Source of the DNA: Salisapilia sapeloensis CBS 127946
Taxonomy: Eukaryota > Protista > Oomycota
DNA length: 64,000 bases
Assembly: GCA_023334545.1 (NCBI GenBank)
Contig: JAADVB010000047.1
Location: forward strand, 29,476-93,475
Direction of reading: 5' to 3'
Shown here: positions 44,508 to 52,000 of the stretch, piece by piece
How the letters are laid out: each line of letters opens with the position of its first letter
How positions within the stretch are numbered: position 1 is the first letter of the stretch
Notes under the pieces: generated by a model
Told to the model about the DNA's origin: nothing
Seen by the model: the letters and a program-made list of their open reading frames with translations, nothing else
The model's database searches: none
Position numbers and translations under genes: made by a program

Positions 44508-45791
44508 TCAGATCTCTCGGAGCACTTCCAGGAGCTGCTGGCGCTGCTGAAGTACCTCCTGGTCACTCGTACGTGTCTCTTCATCCAGAGTCTCAAAGAT
44601 ACCTTCAAAAAAGTCCAATTGGACTTTGGCACGTTCCATCTCGTCATTGTTAAACAGCGTGATGGCGTAGTTCAGATGGAACAAGTGGTCACTTTCCATG
44701 TCAATGGACTTGTCAAACGCAGTACAAGCATTCTCAAAGTCATCCAGACGGCTCAAGGTAATGGCGAGGTACATGTATGAGCTAGCAAAGTCTGGCTTTA
44801 GATTAATCGCCGCACTAAAATAGTGGAACGCCGACGCATATTGACCAGTGTTCAGGTGCACGAGACCGAGGTTGTAGCACGTGATCCACTCGAATGGATC
44901 TAGATACAGAGCCCGTTTTAAACACGACACAGCTGCTACGAAACGCTGCTTCCCAAAGAAGCACATGCCGATATTATTCCACAATTGTGCTGACGCCGGT
45001 GTCTGCACGGCCGCCACGCGGTACTTGACAAGCGCGACGTCCATGTCTCCATTGTCCTGGATGATGGACCCGGCAGCCAGAATCGTCTTGGGATTGCGCG
45101 GATCGTGCGTGAGTGAGTTACCAAGATAATCAAAAGCTCGATAGTTTTCTCCAATGCGGAGGTAGAGTAGACCTAGCGTCGTCAGTATCTCTGGGTTCTC
45201 GGGTGAAAACTCGAGCGCTTCCAAATACACTTCAACCGCTTCCTTGTACTTTTCCTGTAGAGTAAACACCTTGCCTAGTTGGAGGAACGTCGCGTCGTGC
45301 CGAGTGATGCCATTCGCTCGCTGCAGATCGTCCACCGCGGCGTCGTAGTCTTTCAGGTACATGTGACAGAGACCGATGCTATAGAACACTTCCCAGTCCT
45401 CCATGCGACCAGAATCGACGATACCTTCATACACTTCGATGGCAGAAGTATGCTTTCCTAGTAAATATAACGACCTTCCGACTTGCTTCAGGTTCTCCTT
45501 GTTATCCGGATTTAGCACCGTCGCGGCTTGGAAGAGCTGTAGGCTGTCTTGGATACGGCCTCGATGGCGAAGTATCAACGCCTTGATGTAGATCGGGTAC
45601 TCGCTCAGTCCCTGATGCTCCCGTAAGACGCTTTCGACGACACGCAGACATTCCGAATGCTCCGAACGCAAGTAGAGTCGATGTAGGAACCAGTTCTGGT
45701 ACGAAGGTGGGACCACACCCGCGTCCCGTTGTACAGCTGCATGGTAATCACGTGGAGACTTGGCTTGATCGAGTAGATCCGACGTCGTCAT
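44508..45791 (-). CDS. BBS4: Bardet-Biedl syndrome 4 protein (BBSome TPR subunit)
   Basis: QNWFLHRLY, EYPIYIKALI, NLKQVGRSLYLLGKH, LTTLGLLYL, ILAAGSIIQ.NGDMDVALVKYRVAA and LWNNIGMCFFGK. Collinear with BBS4 over its whole length. Confidence 0.95.
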   Translation of the reverse strand: MTTSDLLDQAKSPRDYHAAVQRDAGVVPPSYQNWFLHRLYLRSEHSECLRVVESVLREHQGLSEYPIYIKALILRHRGRIQDSLQLFQAATVLNPDNKENLKQVGRSLYLLGKHTSAIEVYEGIVDSGRMEDWEVFYSIGLCHMYLKDYDAAVDDLQRANGITRHDATFLQLGKVFTLQEKYKEAVEVYLEALEFSPENPEILTTLGLLYLRIGENYRAFDYLGNSLTHDPRNPKTILAAGSIIQDNGDMDVALVKYRVAAVQTPASAQLWNNIGMCFFGKQRFVAAVSCLKRALYLDPFEWITCYNLGLVHLNTGQYASAFHYFSAAINLKPDFASSYMYLAITLSRLDDFENACTAFDKSIDMESDHLFHLNYAITLFNNDEMERAKVQLDFFEGIFETLDEETRTSDQEVLQQRQQLLEVLREI

Positions 45792-45886
45792 GGTGACAAG
45801 TAGCTACGTCGACCAACTTTCCATTGGTACTGTGAAACGGCGCGTGCTAATAATACATCTCGACGACAAAGGGTGGGCAAGAAGGA

Positions 45887-46393
45887 ATGGTAGAAGAAGG
45901 ACATGTAGTAGCTCGTTTAGATCCGATCGGGGATATTTTTGTTAATGGGCTCGCGAACGGGTATGCAGATGAGTACCCTGGTAATTGGGACGCGTCCTTT
46001 GCAGAGTACATGACAAAGGAAGAGTTTGACGACGCGATCAAGAAAATCAATGACGCACTCTTTGATCTGTGGCCGTGTATGCCGTGCACGACGCTTGCCT
46101 ACGGTTGCTGCCTATGTACGTGTGGCCTATCTATCTACGGTGCCTCTTTGCAAGTGAAGGAGGCTGAGGAACGCACGAGAGCACAGATCCAGCGGATCAA
46201 TGAACAAAATAATTTCAAAGCGAACAAGGTCGAGTGGAAGCTCGTACGCATCTGGTATCGACGCTACTCGTACATTGACATTACCACCACGTCTGCACCT
46301 ATTGCCGACGAAGATACTAGTAAGATGCAGTCTGTAGCTATGAGTCCAGACGCTCCGCCGACAGAAGAAATGGCACGAGTCCAGGCAGAATAG
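45887..46393 (+). CDS. Erf4/GOLGA7/CHIC-family cysteine-rich palmitoylated protein
   Basis: MTKEEFDDAIKKIN followed by a Cys-rich hydrophobic stretch (CMPCTTLAYGCCLCTCGLS), then IQRINE...VEWKL. Confidence 0.7.
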   Translation: MVEEGHVVARLDPIGDIFVNGLANGYADEYPGNWDASFAEYMTKEEFDDAIKKINDALFDLWPCMPCTTLAYGCCLCTCGLSIYGASLQVKEAEERTRAQIQRINEQNNFKANKVEWKLVRIWYRRYSYIDITTTSAPIADEDTSKMQSVAMSPDAPPTEEMARVQAE

Positions 46394-46459
46394 CCTTGAA
46401 TCAATTTTGAAACATGTCGTTTGCTTCTCACCATCCTTCCTACTCTCGTTAACACTAGA

Positions 46460-48682
46460 CTAATAAAACACAAAGGAAGCAGAGAGCTGTCGGCTGAACG
46501 ACCGACCTTCGATATTTCTTCGATTCAGACCAGACTCCTCGAGCGCCAAGGCTGTCGCAAAGCCTCCCTGTATTTCACTTTCACGGAAACAGCTCCGACT
46601 CGCGGAGCCGAATGTCCTCTTGCGGTCCACCTCTGCGTACCCCGTATTGTACCGATGCACTTGTAAACGGTTCATACTCAACCGACTCACTTGCTCCTGT
46701 GATAGCGACTCACATATCGCCCTGGGGCAATGGAGCGTATCAAGTAGATGCTGGAAGATGCCACTCGTCTTGAAAGTAGCAAAGGCATGATCATCTAAAG
46801 CAGCGAGGATCTCCTTTCGAGCGTCGTTGAACGTGTCCATCTGGACACTGTCTTCCCTCACGTCGTTCTCGATCGACTGCACCGTCTTCTTCGATATGGA
46901 CACCGGCATAGGCGCTTCCACCGCCAAGAACTTGAAATAGATCATCAAAGCAATCTCATGGTTCTGTTCATCACACCGGCGTTCTAGAGAGTGGCTGAAG
47001 CTTTCAATCGCTCGAAAGAGCTCCACTTCATTGTACTTACACCTTCGAGCCAAACAGTCTGCGCTCCACAATCGACACGCTTCGTAGTGCATCAAGACGT
47101 GCTCGACAGAACAACTTTCACGCAAACACTTGATACAAAACTCGGCGTAGAGCTGCGGTAGGTCTGAAAAGAACTCGTGAAATAAATCTTGACTCAATTG
47201 GAGAGCCAAGCAGTCTTTCGTCGCCTTCACCGTGATGAGCGATAAGGTATCTAGGAGAATCGCTTCTTGACCAAAGTACCCGCCTGGATATACTTTGATC
47301 ACTCCATCTTTCACATAGTCTGCAGTTCCGTTCGTCTTCTTGTCACCTACTTCCGATGGCAGCTTTTCGACTGTCGTTCCGTACTCTATCTCCACCTCTC
47401 CTGTTAAAAGTAAATAAAAGTCATGCGTCGGCGCACCCGACCACATGACGTACGTCCCGCTCATCCACTCGACTAGCTTACTGATAATACTAAGCTCTCG
47501 GAGCTTGTAGCTGGAAACTGCACCGAGGAACGTGGATCCCTGTCGTACCACCGAACCTATTTGCTGGAGCCGGATGTGCTCCTGTATAGCGATACGTATC
47601 CCAGGCGAGAGAGCTCCGACCATTTCAAATGTACTCCGATCAAAGGACAGGAGAAGCGAGTCCGAGAGTGCCGTCACAGTCGCCACTCGCGGCAGATCAT
47701 ATAGCAGTGTAATTTCGCCGAAGAAACTCCCGGAGCTCAAACGACTAAGCGCCGAGAACGTTTTGGTACTAGATGAGGAAGAAGCTGCTTGGTCGGAACT
47801 AGAGCCATCATCCTTCTTAGATACAAAACTGGAGGACGATGCCATGCGTTCGAAAGGCACACTTGCCTGTAGACTTCCTCGAACACATACGTAGAAGCAC
47901 TCTTCCCTTGCTCCTCGCTCATACAACAGTTCATCTCGAGAGATAAATCGGTACGTGCACAAGTTGCAAAGTGCCTCCAAAATCGAGACGTCGACATTCG
48001 CAAGGAACGGAATGTCCGCGAGGTAGATCACAAAGTCCGCTTCGATTATCGAATGCAAGTAGTGAATCTTTTCAGCCGTCGTCATGGTACGACCGTGCGC
48101 GTCACGTGACCTCGGGTCCGAGAAACGAGCAGTGTGCTTCGTATTGGGCTTATGAGCCATCGCTTGGTTCCGCAGCTTGGACAGCTCCGGCTTGACAAGC
48201 TTGAGTAGAGTGCAGCCAGTCGTCACATCCGCCGTAAAGAGGTTTCGATCCAACATGGCTTCCATGGATGGTCGATTCGATGCCTTCTGCTTGCTCGTCA
48301 CATTCGACCCATCGTCTGCAAAGCGCTTGACGAGCTGCTCTCGAACTGCGCATGCTATAAAATGTCCTGGTTTGCGCTGACCTAGTCTAGTCGTCTTGCA
48401 GTCCGTTACTTTCGTCACCTTCCTCGCAGCTTCCGCTGGCTCGGTGATGTAGCTCACATCCACGCCTCCTTCAGCGATAATATAAAAACTCCGTCCGTCA
48501 TTCTGGATTTTAGCTCCTTTGGCGACCGTAACGACTTGGAAGCAGTGCGCGAGGTCGTTTAAGAGATGGTCGTCCAAATGCCGCATGAAGGATGCTGTAC
48601 GTAGTGTTGCAACAATAAGATCGTGTGTTGGCCCACTCGGGTAACTGTATTTTAGCGTTTGCGTTGACAACAGTCCTCCCAT
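46460..48682 (-). CDS. Triple cNMP-binding-domain protein with C-terminal RGS-like domain
   Basis: N-terminus MGGLLS and three cNMP folds, the second with canonical FFGEITLLYDLPRVATV. RGS-like C-terminus: IYFKFLAVEAPMPVSISKK...DTFNDARKEILAAL...FATFKTS. Confidence 0.85.
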   Translation of the reverse strand: MGGLLSTQTLKYSYPSGPTHDLIVATLRTASFMRHLDDHLLNDLAHCFQVVTVAKGAKIQNDGRSFYIIAEGGVDVSYITEPAEAARKVTKVTDCKTTRLGQRKPGHFIACAVREQLVKRFADDGSNVTSKQKASNRPSMEAMLDRNLFTADVTTGCTLLKLVKPELSKLRNQAMAHKPNTKHTARFSDPRSRDAHGRTMTTAEKIHYLHSIIEADFVIYLADIPFLANVDVSILEALCNLCTYRFISRDELLYERGAREECFYVCVRGSLQASVPFERMASSSSFVSKKDDGSSSDQAASSSSSTKTFSALSRLSSGSFFGEITLLYDLPRVATVTALSDSLLLSFDRSTFEMVGALSPGIRIAIQEHIRLQQIGSVVRQGSTFLGAVSSYKLRELSIISKLVEWMSGTYVMWSGAPTHDFYLLLTGEVEIEYGTTVEKLPSEVGDKKTNGTADYVKDGVIKVYPGGYFGQEAILLDTLSLITVKATKDCLALQLSQDLFHEFFSDLPQLYAEFCIKCLRESCSVEHVLMHYEACRLWSADCLARRCKYNEVELFRAIESFSHSLERRCDEQNHEIALMIYFKFLAVEAPMPVSISKKTVQSIENDVREDSVQMDTFNDARKEILAALDDHAFATFKTSGIFQHLLDTLHCPRAICESLSQEQVSRLSMNRLQVHRYNTGYAEVDRKRTFGSASRSCFRESEIQGGFATALALEESGLNRRNIEGRSFSRQLSASFVFY

Positions 48683-49000
48683 GTCGCCTTAGGATCCTAC
48701 AAACTGCAGGTCGGGACAACGCGATAAAAGGCGATCCAGAGTTTCCAGTGCACGAGATTACCACGTCCCTTCAAGTCACTTTCTATCGAAAGACCTCGGT
48801 CCGTGAGCTAGTAAGCGCGCTCGACACTTGTTCTCTAGTAATTGGCTTCCTGCTTGACGTCCTCATCCTGACAAAAATAGATGCATGAGGTAGGACAAAG
48901 ATAGCATTCGGTCGAAACCTTCGGGAGGAGGCGCTTGGACGTGCCTACACAAACATTTGCGACTCAATTGACATCCGTCACATCGTGCTCAAACCTGATC

Positions 49001-52000
49001 ATGCCGTCCATGCAAGGCAGAATCGATAGCATGGGCACTGTTGGTATGTAGCCTTCTTTGATGGATAGACGACTAGGACTGATACTCTAACGAATGCCAT
49101 CTCGTCATGTAGCTTGGAACCAGTACCAGCGCCTTTTGACGGATGAACGCTTGATGGCGTACTTTAGTGCAGAGGCAGATCGCTTTGCGGCATCCACTTC
49201 CAAGCCGGATGACATCCTTCGGAGGTTCAGTCTCAGTGGCGACGGGTATCTAGATCTGAAAGAGTTCCAGCTTGCCATGAAACGACTTGGCATGTGGTCT
49301 GAACTTGACTTCTCTCATTCCACTTCCCATGCATCTGACGCAAGTGAGACGGCAATGAAACGAGCTCGGGAACTTTTCACGGTCTTTTGTCCAACCCACG
49401 TACGCAAATTGGACATTGGGCTCTTTTGCCGCATCATGACCGAATGGTCTCTTCGTCTGATGCGCAAGCGAGCGATTGAGAGTCGACAGTCAGCACCGTC
49501 ATTGCCAACACCTCGGGACTCTCTCTCGAGTTTAAATGACAATTTTATTCGTTCTTCGTACAACAATTTGGACGGCATCGCAGCACCGTACGCGACCGAG
49601 CGATCAAGGGTTGTGCAAGACCCGAGGAAGCCTCTTATACCAAATGAAGCAGAGCCGTACGCGGCACTCTGGCGACGTCTTGTTGAGCCGATCCACCGCA
49701 GTATGGAGAAACTCCAGCACATGTTCTTCAACATGGACATCGGAAGCACTGGCAGTGTCAAGCAAGAGGAATTCGAACTCGCTCTTAGTCACATCGGTGT
49801 CTTCCTTACTCCTCAAGAGTACCAGGACCTGTACAAGTCGTTCCCAGACAATGTGAAATTTGCAGGTGACCACGCGTCCGCTTTCGAAGTGAAATACGCC
49901 AACTTCCTTTTACTGTTTAAAGAAAAGGATCATCTAGAACACACTACCACCTCCTCTCATGCCACACCTCCAGTCGCTGGTGTTGGAAGTGGGAGATTAT
50001 GGGATCTAATCGTGATGGAACGAGAGAAACTTGCATCCATGTTCCACCAGTACGAACGCATTCATCAGTATGAGCTTCCACCCGACAGCTTTCGAGAATG
50101 TCTTCGCCAAGCCGGGATTTCTATGAGCAATGCAGACTTCGCTGCCCTACGTGTTCGTCTTCTACCATACACGTAAGAGCCATTAGCTTCTTTATATTAT
50201 ATAATTTATTAATATTTGTCTTTTGTAGAGACTCCAACGGATGTATACGGCTCTCTCCTCTCGTCCAGGCCATTGCAGACAGCGAGATCGCCACGCACAA
50301 GACGGCCATTGCTCCACAGTCCAAACCGCCAGCGCAAGCTGCGACGAATGAACCAAAGCAGGGCAAACGCACATCGCCAGGCCCACCACTGGACGATGCA
50401 CAGGACGAATATCAAGCTCTTCCTCGTCCAGCAGGAAAGTCTAATCAGCAACGGTACACTCTACGAGCCTCTTGTTATCTTCCGTAGGTGCTAACACCCT
50501 CCTTATTAGAGATGCGGAGGCGAACCGGTCCATCGTACGCATTCGAGACGAAAGTCGATGGAAGAGTAACTTGGGCCTCCACCTGACCCAGTCAGAGGAC
50601 CAAACGCCCGACAATACGGTACGCCAGAAACCCATGAACGTAAACGTCTGTGCTGCGTTGGAGGCGCTCGAGCAGCGGATCTTGTACAAAATGCATCAGG
50701 CGCAGCAGCTCGGACGGCCCAACGTCAACTCGGTACAGGCAGTGTTCCCAGGTGACCAGTTCGGGAAGATCACGCGAGGACAGTTTCGCCAGAGCCTTGC
50801 ACACATCGGTCTCATCGCTCGGTACGCTGAAGTCGAAGCTCTGTTCTGGAAGCTCGACGCTCTTGGTCGAGGGTACATTGAAAACGAAGCTCTGTACGCG
50901 CATCTCGCAAGAGCGAGTGCTCGGCGAGAGAGAAGACAGTCGGACGAGGTGGAAGGTAGCTCTTCCGTTCAGGATGAAGAAGCAGACAAGAGGAATGGTC
51001 TGTATGTCGATATATCCGATGAAGACGATCGAGAACAAGTGTCGTCTCGAAGCTTCTCTCGGTCGGTGCAAAAGATCTTTGAGGCCATGCTGTCTGATCT
51101 GCCGCTTGTCGTTCGACTGTGTCGGCAAGAAGACACCTACCAAACAGGCACAGTCTCCCGTGCGCAGCTTTTAGGTATCATGTATGAAGCCGGCATCCTA
51201 GCACCAGCGTCCGACATGCAGGCTGCTGTAGGCGCTTTGGCCAGTAAGAGCAGTGCTAGTCCGGACGACGTTGGCAGTTCAGAATCGACATCACCACGCA
51301 TTGACTATGTGGGCATGGAAGATAAGCTTATGAATCTATGTAGCGACCTCCTGTCGCCTTGTAAGAGTAGGCAGCACCAGTCCACGACGTCTGTCCTGCT
51401 GTCGCCCCACGAGCGTGCGAATGATGACAACCGTCGGACCTTGATGAGCAGTGGAGACTACCAGGAACACATCAGCCGACGTCGTGTGAACTACAACCAT
51501 CCAGCAGCAAAGTCTTCTCTTCGGATTGTTGATCCAGTCATGGAAACCAACGCGGTGGAACAAAAGGAGAGAAGCTCTCAAGGAGGAGAGCGACGCAATC
51601 GCCGAGCTCTAATCGTGATTCTACAAGAACTACTCGAAAGCCGAGGCATCTTAAAGACCGTCATGGACTTGTACAGACGAGCGGACCTGCATGGATACGT
51701 GACGAGGGCCGAGCTTGCAGACATCTTCCTTTCGTCCCGCCTCGCCTTGAATTTCTCCACATCACTCACATGTGGCATGTCCGTGCATGAGTTTATCGAC
51801 GAAATGTACCCTACAGATGGGACGGAGCCACGCCTTGTGTCGTTCCTGGATGTGATTAAGCGTGCAACTGACCTTTTCGCCGAGGTTACCAATGGAAAGC
51901 TCGACGGCTCGAGAAACGGTAGTCAAGCTACCAAGCACGATCGCCCGCAGCACTATCGATCTCGACGGAACCATACAGGAGGATGGGTCCAGGGCTTTGA

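Follow-up and report, generated by a model that had tools for sequence, protein, structure and literature searches.

A CNB-RGS fusion protein of the oomycete Salisapilia sapeloensis with a single canonical cyclic nucleotide-binding cassette and replaced canonical G-alpha contacts

According to reviews and RNA-seq papers (PMC9694693, PMC5322657), cyclic nucleotides and the single G-alpha are both important in oomycete spore biology, but these papers give no molecular link between them. Proteins of the CNB-RGS family are the obvious candidate for such a cyclic nucleotide/G-alpha link in oomycetes. One of them is encoded in the window analyzed here, i.e., a stretch of 64,000 nucleotides from contig JAADVB010000047.1 of Salisapilia sapeloensis CBS 127946, and raises the question of whether its product is, as an initial sequence-only reading had proposed, a membrane-anchored, cyclic nucleotide-gated GAP for G-alpha or rather a catalytically dead RGS adaptor.

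The features of the gene are listed in Table 1. A stop codon located in frame two codons 5' of the ATG (sequence reading) supports the start codon and thus identifies MGGLLS as the true N-terminus. Seven homologs (36-39% identity) are collinear with the 740-aa protein over its entire length; for the Phytophthora-type proteins, identity is 36-41% over 91-100% of the length. An MG start and an S-x-S-F-V-F C-terminus are common to full-length homologs; as the homologs match end to end with conserved termini, the gene model is regarded as complete. RNA-like contigs cover the whole coding sequence at 100% identity, with no splice joint on the minus strand. Overall, the reading frame is unbroken, the gene is conserved, and the RNA-like contigs indicate that it is transcribed.

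Table 1. Positions (within the window) of the CNB-RGS gene, its protein domains and an overlapping plus-strand intron
Feature	Residues	Coordinates	Strand	Remark
cNMP-RGS CDS		46460..48682	-	intronless, complete, 740 aa + stop
MGGLLST, predicted N-myristoylation signal (Gly2, Ser6)		48662..48682	-	motif reading
CNB1	20-178	48149..48625	-	CNB fold, degenerate cassette
CNB2	205-372	47567..48070	-	sole canonical cNMP-binding domain
CNB3	373-508	47159..47566	-	pseudo-CNB
RGS-homology domain	509-652	46727..47158	-	Pfam RGS, nine predicted helices
C-terminal tail	653-740	46463..46726	-	two short predicted helices, then disorder
57-nt GT...AG intron		46649..46705	+	intron of plus-strand transcript (antisense or read-through); overlaps codons 660-678

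The myristoylation consensus (MGxxxS) noted initially is indeed present, and M-G-G-L-L-S-T matches, by reading, the PROSITE PS00008 pattern (G-{EDRKHPFYW}-x(2)-[STAGCN]-{P}). An MG-type N-terminus is conserved among the oomycete homologs in the alignment; across the family, 53 of 92 RGS-bearing members start with MG, 24 of these 53 with a Cys at positions 3-6. At the other end of the protein, the tail loses its order at around residue 682 (pLDDT under 50 over residues 682-740 in the AF2 model) and ends in R-Q-L-S-A-S-F-V-F-Y, a terminus that is conserved among oomycete homologs as R-K-L-S-[TSK]-[SA]-F-[VL]-F.

Three cNMP folds had been claimed, and all three were confirmed, CNB2 and CNB3 by Pfam and CNB1 by structure matches. 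The cNMP_binding Pfam score for the whole protein was 76.6 bits, and scanning the domains one by one against Pfam gave 45.6 bits for CNB2 and 37.3 bits for CNB3, with no Pfam match for CNB1 even when scanned separately. The domain model of CNB1 (pLDDT 81.9) aligned with PKG I (3shr_A) at a VIA-align Z of 11.1 over 130 residues; its best 50 VIA-align rows were all of CNB/CRP type and its best 50 Foldseek matches were all CNB domains. Foldseek and VIA lists for the whole model were likewise filled with CNB matches. An NCBIfam scan returned only sub-threshold CNB-like matches (e.g., family 2B encapsulin at 42 bits, with the cutoff at 400), which were uninformative.

The cassettes of the three domains differ considerably. 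In CNB2, the cassette (positions 47675-47731, with FFGEITLLYDLPRVATV at residues 320-336) includes G318, F321-G322-E323 and P331-R332-V-A-T, and G318, F321, G322, E323 and R332 are each conserved in at least 90% of 76 sequences. CNB2 also contains a disordered Ser-rich loop (residues 279-308), and its R-V-A-T does not discriminate between cAMP and cGMP. In CNB1, the homolog alignment shows that the FGE motif is lost (I-A-C) and that the Arg is not aligned; an inserted helical stretch of roughly 25-35 aa (helices 114-124 and 130-144 in the model) takes the place of the phosphate-binding cassette. In CNB3, the cassette (positions 47228-47284, with YFGQEAILLDTLSLITV at residues 469-485) reads G-F-G-Q...S, with Gln472 in place of Glu and Ser481 in place of Arg. 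In a census of the CNB3 cassette, the peronosporalean-type members had GFGQ..S (P0005 alone had GFGH..S), Aphanomyces had GFGE..S, and almost every tabulated non-oomycete member had GFGE..R[TA]A[TS]. The two quoted cassettes are present as initially read, and the census agrees that the middle domain alone is canonical: judged by these residues, CNB1 and CNB3 are pseudo-sites, with Gly-Glu and Arg, which grip the phosphate and ribose of the cyclic nucleotide, retained only by CNB2.

As CNB1 and CNB3 are clearly degenerate, one might propose that the protein is free of cyclic nucleotide regulation, CNB2 binding another ligand or none, like the cAMP-independent trypanosome PKA regulatory subunits, and the CNB array serving only as a structural scaffold for the RGS-like domain. 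The presence of trypanosome PKA-R structures (6hyq and 6flo, with nucleosides instead of cAMP) among the structural matches shows that CNB folds can change ligand. We nevertheless consider this explanation improbable, as CNB2 retains every diagnostic residue at the conservation given above and superposes on a cAMP-binding CNBD (MloK1, 1u12_A; VIA-align Z 19.2) with an rmsd of 1.4 A.

The best structural matches (Plasmodium PKG over 553 columns, PKA-R and PKG I) belong to proteins in which, as in the window protein, long B/C helices connect one CNB domain to the next. Unlike PKA regulatory subunits and PKG, however, the window protein contains no kinase or inhibitor sequence, has an RGS output and keeps only one of three sites intact. 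The full-length AF2 model (pLDDT 82.5, pTM 0.80) implies defined interdomain packing, and in it helices 498-505 and 509-523 join CNB3 to the RGS domain.

The RGS-like C-terminus that had been proposed is also borne out by both the HMM and AlphaFold checks suggested with it. The domain scored 42.2 bits against Pfam PF00615 in the whole protein and 44.8 bits as an isolated C-terminal piece (cutoff 23.9), and the motifs quoted for it were all found, including IYFKFLAVEAPMPVSI (residues 581-596) and FNDARKEIL...F..F (residues 618-637). In the AF2 model, pLDDT exceeds 90 across most of residues 509-650 and nine helices are predicted (509-523, 526-531, 533-545, 550-565, 571-586, 598-609, 619-629, 632-638 and 641-650). 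The best sequence matches were R4/R12-type RGS domains, i.e., RGS18 (2dlv; profile E 5e-12), followed by RGS12 (2ebz), RGS10 (2i59) and RGS4 (1agr_E; 3e-7), with which the window domain shares the nine-helix organisation and core residues F618, E624, F634, F637, K638 and F643. The box that usually reads S-E-N does differ in the window protein, as had been noted (LWSADCLARRCKYNEVELF, residues 538-556).

The RGS4 residues that touch G-alpha were reportedly defined by Tesmer et al. in 1997; eight of these positions (S85, E87, N88, N128, L159, D163, S164 and R167) were compared, with RGS4 numbering verified from chain offsets and the alignment with RGS18. The window protein has K549, N551, E552, S595, A628, H632, A633 and T636 at these positions, i.e., it nowhere matches the canonical residue, and thus differs from R4/R12-type RGS proteins in every switch-contact residue examined. 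Conversely, the wider CNB-RGS family shows S/A, E, N, N, L, D, S/N and R at the same positions, and among 100 family RGS domains the canonical residue was found in 79 for E87, 87 for N128, 78 for D163 and 73 for R167. Ranked by entropy among 123 columns, E87 (rank 4), N128 (rank 3) and D163 (rank 8) are among the most conserved positions outside the oomycetes; inside the oomycete clade the contact columns belong to the least conserved of the domain, with ranks of 74 for E87, 113 for N128, 86 for D163, 122 for L159 and 91 for R167, and position 128 varies among N, V, K, R, S and M.

Loss of the canonical contacts, together with the long stem branch of the clade (see below), would also be seen if the RGS-like part were a decaying, functionless remnant, or the reading frame a pseudogene or chance ORF. 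We regard this as very improbable, and it is effectively already refuted by conservation. Within the oomycete clade, no domain of the protein is better conserved than the RGS domain (46% identity to clade homologs, as compared to 38-39% for the CNB domains), with 42 near-invariant columns, 17 of which are clade-specific (at positions 526-579 and 631). The frame of 740 codons is intact and covered by RNA-like contigs, and orthologues span Aphanomyces to Phytophthora; a pseudogene or chance ORF was rejected on these grounds.

The fusion itself is less novel than had been implied. Of 76 relatives (oomycetes, ochrophytes, a dinoflagellate, Rhizaria and a euglenid among them), 75 carry the cNMP+RGS pair according to Pfam, and the ESM Atlas holds a 336-member cluster automatically named [quoted passage not shown] (score 0.95), commonest in Oomycota. 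When the whole 740-residue model served as a shape query, the ESM Atlas gave nothing beyond generic CNB multidomain clusters (TM 0.30-0.36). Public assemblies gave no exact match to the protein. The combination is also mentioned in the 2014 survey by de Mendoza et al. (PMC3971589). An annotator could treat the gene as an ordinary member of a cluster that already carries a name. Searches of the literature (on RGS in Phytophthora, on RGS and cyclic nucleotide binding in protists, and on PsGPA1 and RGS) found no functional study of CNB-RGS proteins.

The window protein shares the domain order (two or three CNB domains, then RGS) and the MG N-terminus of the protist CNB-RGS family and nests in the family's oomycete clade, where it is placed between Aphanomyces and the Pythium/Phytophthora group. 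This clade (12 members) is monophyletic (SH-aLRT 100), and no other inner branch of the tree is as long as the one on which it sits (0.78). Ochrophytes form its sister groups (the named sequences from the sister clades are ochrophytes, none oomycete), and the ochrophyte members in the contact census retain the canonical residues. The canonical G-alpha contacts and the CNB3 cassette are kept in non-oomycete members but lost in the oomycete proteins.

Under one rival explanation, the window protein would be a true membrane-anchored GAP for the single oomycete G-alpha, gated by cNMP, and its replaced contact residues would reflect an interface that co-evolved with a divergent G-alpha. Several observations are compatible with this explanation, i.e., the RGS domain scores above the Pfam cutoff and is nearest to the GAP-active R4/R12 proteins, the clade conserves R-x-[NHQ]-E-V-x-L-F as its alpha3-alpha4 segment, and the remaining family appears GAP-competent from its residues. 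Phytophthora members still have Asn where RGS4 has N128, and the Ser of the window protein is found there in active RZ-type RGS proteins and is tolerated by some active RGS proteins. The reversal of E-N to N-E at 87/88, conserved as [NHQ]-E in the clade, could represent an interface co-evolved with the oomycete G-alpha. P. infestans, according to a review, has a sole G-alpha (PMC9694693). On the other hand, the N128, L159, D163 and R167 columns vary within the clade, which is not expected of a catalytic interface that is co-evolved and conserved. In general, G-alpha switch regions are highly conserved, and there is therefore little room for co-evolution. On balance, we consider a co-evolved GAP rather unlikely, if worth weighing.

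Of the two possibilities offered by the sequence-only reading, the contact residues and entropy ranks instead favor the adaptor and speak against the gated GAP. A repurposed RGS adaptor, in which the canonical G-alpha contacts have been replaced, appears moderately probable as compared to a classical cNMP-gated GAP. Non-GAP RGS-homology domains such as those of GRK2, axin and sorting nexin 13 likewise keep the fold with the canonical G-alpha-binding residues absent, and one survey describes the GRK RGS domain as inactive and assigns a scaffold role to some RGS domains (PMC3971589). The window domain nevertheless lies outside those subfamilies, as it matched GRK, SNX13 and axin more weakly (about 1e-6, 1.7e-6 and 5e-3, respectively) than R4/R12 domains; best scores against GAP-active RGS proteins, rather than against GRK, axin or SNX RH domains, are a counterpoint to repurposing.

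If the protein is such an adaptor, a single myristate would hold it at the membrane and CNB2 would bind one cAMP or cGMP. The resulting conformational change may be relayed via the C-helix of CNB2, the pseudo-CNB3 and the continuous helix into RGS helix 1, where it would alter the binding options of the RGS-like domain. As constraint has moved off the G-alpha face, classical GTPase acceleration on G-alpha is most likely not the output; cNMP-controlled binding of another partner would be more likely, or else an atypical, weak interaction with G-alpha. A sensor fused to a GTPase regulator follows the same logic as the established case of Epac, a cAMP-regulated Rap GEF, and the sensor-RGS fusion logic resembles that of RGS-LOV (PMC6099885) and 7TM-RGS proteins (PMC3971589). 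However, the sensor or output domains of Epac, RGS-LOV and 7TM-RGS differ from those of the window protein, and homology is limited to the CNB or the RGS part.

These residue comparisons suggest that the oomycete CNB-RGS proteins, including the window protein, probably changed function. A non-classical result should thus be expected from GAP assays or knockouts in Phytophthora, for which a canonical family member would be a useful control. Non-oomycete members, which keep every canonical residue, are presumed to be better candidates for true cNMP-gated GAPs; those of, for example, Triparma, Leptophrys and Ploeotia have every residue needed for this activity.

Four cysteines (Cys516, Cys519, Cys543 and Cys652) are invariant in the peronosporalean-type members and the window protein, a gain as compared to other CNB-RGS members. 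The C-x-x-C at the CNB3/RGS junction, together with C543 and C652, is a possible zinc or redox site that would clamp the terminal subdomain. As a tentative scenario, which we regard as unlikely in its full detail, a true cNMP-gated G-alpha GAP may have been converted in the oomycete ancestor, with constraint leaving the G-alpha face and a new conserved surface arising on RGS helices 2-5; the four invariant cysteines would have followed later, in the lineage of the window organism and Pythium/Phytophthora, to yield a cNMP-dependent, perhaps redox-dependent adaptor for a non-G-alpha partner. If true, this would represent a clean natural case of an RGS domain that switched its client while the sensor was retained.

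A link to zoospores, which had also been suggested, is unsupported by the available data. RNA-like contigs of the CNB-RGS gene occur in samples without any for the adjacent ciliary gene BBS4; as contigs cannot prove silence, this difference is a hint only.

Three of four RNA-like runs showed a joint (46648>46706) that skips 57 nt within the coding sequence, and the unspliced form was present as well. The skipped segment reads GTACCG...GATAG on the plus strand, whereas the minus strand would give CT..AC, and it was rejected as an intron of the CNB-RGS gene on the basis of this GT..AG polarity; moreover, the skipped residues match conserved residues of the homologs. The joint is exactly in frame, which by chance would be expected in one case out of three.

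The 740-aa cNMP-RGS protein is encoded by a single unbroken open reading frame, for which a model without splicing is sufficient; as a stop codon is located in frame two codons 5' of the ATG, the protein begins M-G-G-L-L-S. Seven homologs, 738-797 aa long (from Phytophthora and further sources), align with it over nearly the full length at 36-39% identity, show the same pair of Pfam domains (cNMP_binding and RGS) and share a C-terminus of the S-x-S-F-V-F type; most also start with M-G, although the annotation of one begins at a later Met and another carries the M-G-G motif internally. Among 92 family members, 53 start with M-G, 24 of them with a nearby Cys, which the oomycete members lack. In oomycete homologs, the C-terminal motif of the window protein has its counterpart in R-K-L-S-[TSK]-[SA]-F-[VL]-F at the very end of the chain; a disordered tail that contains a basic R-R-K patch precedes it. 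Speculatively, the motif looks like a basophilic kinase site with a hydrophobic C-terminal ligand motif after it.

Location of the cNMP-RGS gene, its neighbours and associated features (positions in the window)
Feature	Position	Strand	Description
cNMP-RGS gene	46460-48682	-	740 aa
C-terminal motif	46463-46500	-	residues ~729-740, R-Q-L-S-A-S-F-V-F-Y
C516, C519, C543, C652	46727-47137	-	four cysteines
Spliced joint	46649-46705	+	57 nt, GT...AG
RNA-like contigs spanning the joint	45871-47464		
RNA-like contigs over the spacer	48664-48854, 48818-49133		
Erf4-like gene	45887-46393	+	168 aa, Cys-rich, C-C-L-C-T-C motif; Erf4/GOLGA7 25 bits, sub-threshold (cutoff 29.3)
BBS4 orthologue	44508-45791	-	427-aa TPR protein, ciliary BBSome subunit; 6xt9_D, E 8e-129
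Divergent neighbour gene	49094-50176	+	360 aa, weak EF-hand matches

When the whole protein was scanned with Pfam, cNMP_binding scored 76.6 bits and RGS 42.2 bits (RGS gathering cutoff 23.9); scanned as separate pieces, residues 201-375 and 376-525 matched cNMP_binding (45.6 and 37.3 bits, respectively), the isolated C-terminal piece matched RGS (44.8 bits) and residues 1-200 matched no Pfam family. The full-length AlphaFold2 model, built from an alignment of 76 relatives, was graded confident (mean pLDDT 82.5, pTM 0.80); it is compact, with nine helices within residues 509-650 in the RGS region and the last helices of CNB3 continuing into RGS helix 1. As modelled, CNB2 superposed on the cyclic-nucleotide-binding domain of MloK1 with a Z of 19.2 (rmsd 1.4 A, 129 residues). 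The N-terminal domain (CNB1), modelled alone (pLDDT 81.9), matched PKG I (Z 11.1 over 130 residues); the 50 best rows of a structural search against 48,161 representative chains were all CNB/CRP-type domains, and the best 50 Foldseek matches were all CNB domains. The three cNMP folds proposed in the sequence-only reading are thus correct, CNB2 and CNB3 by Pfam and CNB1 by its modelled fold; each motif it quoted was found in place, and open reading frame, Pfam, motifs and models together confirm the domain anatomy that it described. A profile of nine RGS sequences was most similar to RGS18 (5e-12), RGS12, RGS10 and RGS4 in 1agr (3e-7), and scored worse against the RH domains of GRK, SNX13 and axin.

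That reading had left two functions open, i.e., a cNMP-gated GAP for G-alpha or a catalytically dead RGS adaptor. We consider the residues that contact G-alpha, for which the RGS4-Gi-alpha1 structure of Tesmer and colleagues (1997) is reportedly the source. RGS4 numbering was mapped via the RGS18 alignment and chain offsets; on this mapping the S-E-E-N box holds S85, E87 and N88, the E-V-N-L-D segment N128, and the D-S-Y-x-R segment D163, S164 and R167. Among 100 near-complete RGS domains of the CNB-RGS family, the canonical residue was found in 79 at E87, 56 at N88, 87 at N128, 70 at L159, 78 at D163 and 73 at R167. The window protein carries K, Y, N and E at positions 85-88 and S, A, H, A and T at 128, 159, 163, 164 and 167, and these positions are changed likewise across the whole oomycete clade. 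Conservation ranks over 123 columns were 4th, 3rd and 8th for E87, N128 and D163 in non-oomycetes, as compared to 74th, 113th and 86th (and 122nd for L159) in the oomycete clade. On these alignments, the shift in the pattern of constraint appears more telling than the replacements themselves. The oomycete RGS domain is nevertheless not decaying. Within the clade it is conserved better than any other part of the protein, with 46% identity as compared to 38-39% in the CNB domains, and it contains 42 near-invariant columns, 17 of them clade-specific (positions 526-579 and 631).

Four cysteines, i.e., C516 and C519 (a C-x-x-C at the CNB3/RGS junction), C543 (A-D-C motif) and C652 (H-C-P motif), are present without exception in the window protein and every peronosporalean-type (Pythium/Phytophthora-type) homolog and are a possible zinc or redox site. 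Aphanomyces has only C652 of the four, and non-oomycetes mostly have other residues at all four positions.

All CNB domains of the retrieved proteins were aligned to one HMM and the diagnostic columns were read. CNB2 has the cassette G-F-G-E...P-R-V-A-T, with G318, F321, G322, E323 and R332 at least 90% conserved among 76 sequences. In CNB3 the cassette is G-F-G-Q...S (Glu to Gln472, Arg to Ser481), a form found across peronosporalean-type members except the homolog P0005, which has His for Gln; Aphanomyces has G-F-G-E...S, and nearly all tabulated non-oomycete members have G-F-G-E...R-[TA]-A-[TS]. CNB1 lacks the Gly-Glu, and a helical insertion takes the position of its cassette; some non-oomycete members share this insertion and others keep a canonical CNB1. 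The census agrees with the earlier claim that only the middle domain has a canonical cassette. As the diagnostic residues are intact in CNB2 and degenerate in CNB1 and CNB3, ligand binding is likely at one of the three sites, and CNB1 and CNB3 would represent conserved pseudo-sites. The R-V-A-T of CNB2 would not discriminate between cAMP and cGMP as the ligand. In the wider-family alignment, non-oomycete members mostly carry R-T-A-T cassettes and oomycete CNB2 reads R-V-A-T or R-V-C-S. R-T-A-T resembles the PKG cassette, and a Thr following the Arg typifies cGMP-selective PKG sites; the oomycete and other clades may differ in the ligand that they prefer.

Overall, with contact residues lost and constraint moved, the dead or repurposed RGS is favored over the classical cNMP-gated GAP, and the interpretation given in the sequence-only reading is supported in part. 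We consider it somewhat probable that the oomycete protein is a cNMP-relayed, repurposed RGS with changed partner binding. A single myristate would provide weak or switchable membrane binding, and cNMP bound to CNB2 would act through pseudo-CNB3 on the RGS-like domain, with altered partner binding rather than classical GTPase acceleration as the output. The alternative, a genuine cNMP-gated GAP whose interface has co-evolved, seems rather unlikely given the altered contacts, although some active RGS proteins accept Ser at the N128 position and Phytophthora retains Asn there, which are weaknesses of the repurposed reading. Least probable is a functionless remnant, or a protein without cNMP sensing, set beside an RGS domain under constraint and an intact CNB2 cassette.

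In a quick maximum-likelihood analysis under LG+G4 (76 rows, 420 columns from CNB2 to RGS), the oomycete sequences formed one clade (SH-aLRT 100) on the longest inner branch of the tree (0.78). Inside this clade Aphanomyces diverges first, followed by the window protein and after it by the Pythium and Phytophthora groups; the source organism is probably an oomycete placed outside the latter two. Where members of the neighbouring clades are named, they are ochrophytes, and those tabulated retain the canonical contact residues. The simplest reading of this tree would be vertical descent within stramenopiles with a single burst of change at the oomycete base. A useful addition is the evidence, at the level of residues, that the oomycete clade has apparently departed from the canonical GAP mode; a second is the pointer to non-oomycete members as likely true cNMP-gated GAPs.

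The gene itself joins a family that is already known and annotated automatically, yet experimentally untouched. A profile search with the first nine sequences against 1.84 billion cluster representatives yielded 401 proteins at E <=1e-30, many matching profile positions ~200-625 (CNB2, CNB3 and RGS). A local HMM matched RGS in 129 of the 157 proteins gathered, and aligned members carried Pfam cNMP_binding in 76/76 and RGS in 75/76. Members include oomycetes (Phytophthora, Pythium oligandrum, Globisporangium, Aphanomyces stellatus), ochrophytes (Triparma, Florenciella), a dinoflagellate (Durusdinium), Rhizaria (Leptophrys, Mataza) and a euglenid (Ploeotia). An automatically named ESM Atlas cluster of 336 members, commonest in Oomycota, matches the query at 0.95, and de Mendoza et al. 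2014 (PMC3971589) name cNMP binding as one of the domains recurring in the RGS genes of distant taxa; as our literature search found no paper testing a cNMP-RGS protein, the fusion is known as an annotation and is experimentally uncharacterised. At NCBI, P0001 and P0013 (homologs from Phytophthora cinnamomi and Globisporangium splendens) are labelled [quoted passage not shown], probably a propagated misannotation; P0001 has cNMP_binding and RGS as recorded Pfam domains, and P0013 aligns over the CNB region without an RGS match.

Four runs, all from one study, are apparently RNA, as they show no contig on BBS4 while the flanking genes are covered, and contain a GT..AG joint. Their contigs, which indicate presence and not expression level, tile the full coding sequence at 100% identity. 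This absence of BBS4 contigs from all four runs suggests samples from a non-flagellate stage. The only joint on the gene lies inside minus-strand codons 660-678, was spliced in three of the four runs and is also present unspliced. Its removal would leave the minus-strand reading frame intact, but on that strand the polarity reads CT..AC, which rules it out as an intron of the cNMP-RGS mRNA. With its plus-strand polarity it belongs to a transcript, either antisense or read-through, of the convergent Erf4-like gene, whose stop codon is 66 bp from that of the cNMP-RGS gene; this implies a transcript that begins close to the Erf4-like gene (the contigs begin 16 nt 5' of its ATG) and reaches 1 kb or more into the RGS-coding part. 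RNA-like contigs also covered the 411-bp spacer that separates the start codons of the cNMP-RGS gene and its divergent neighbour.
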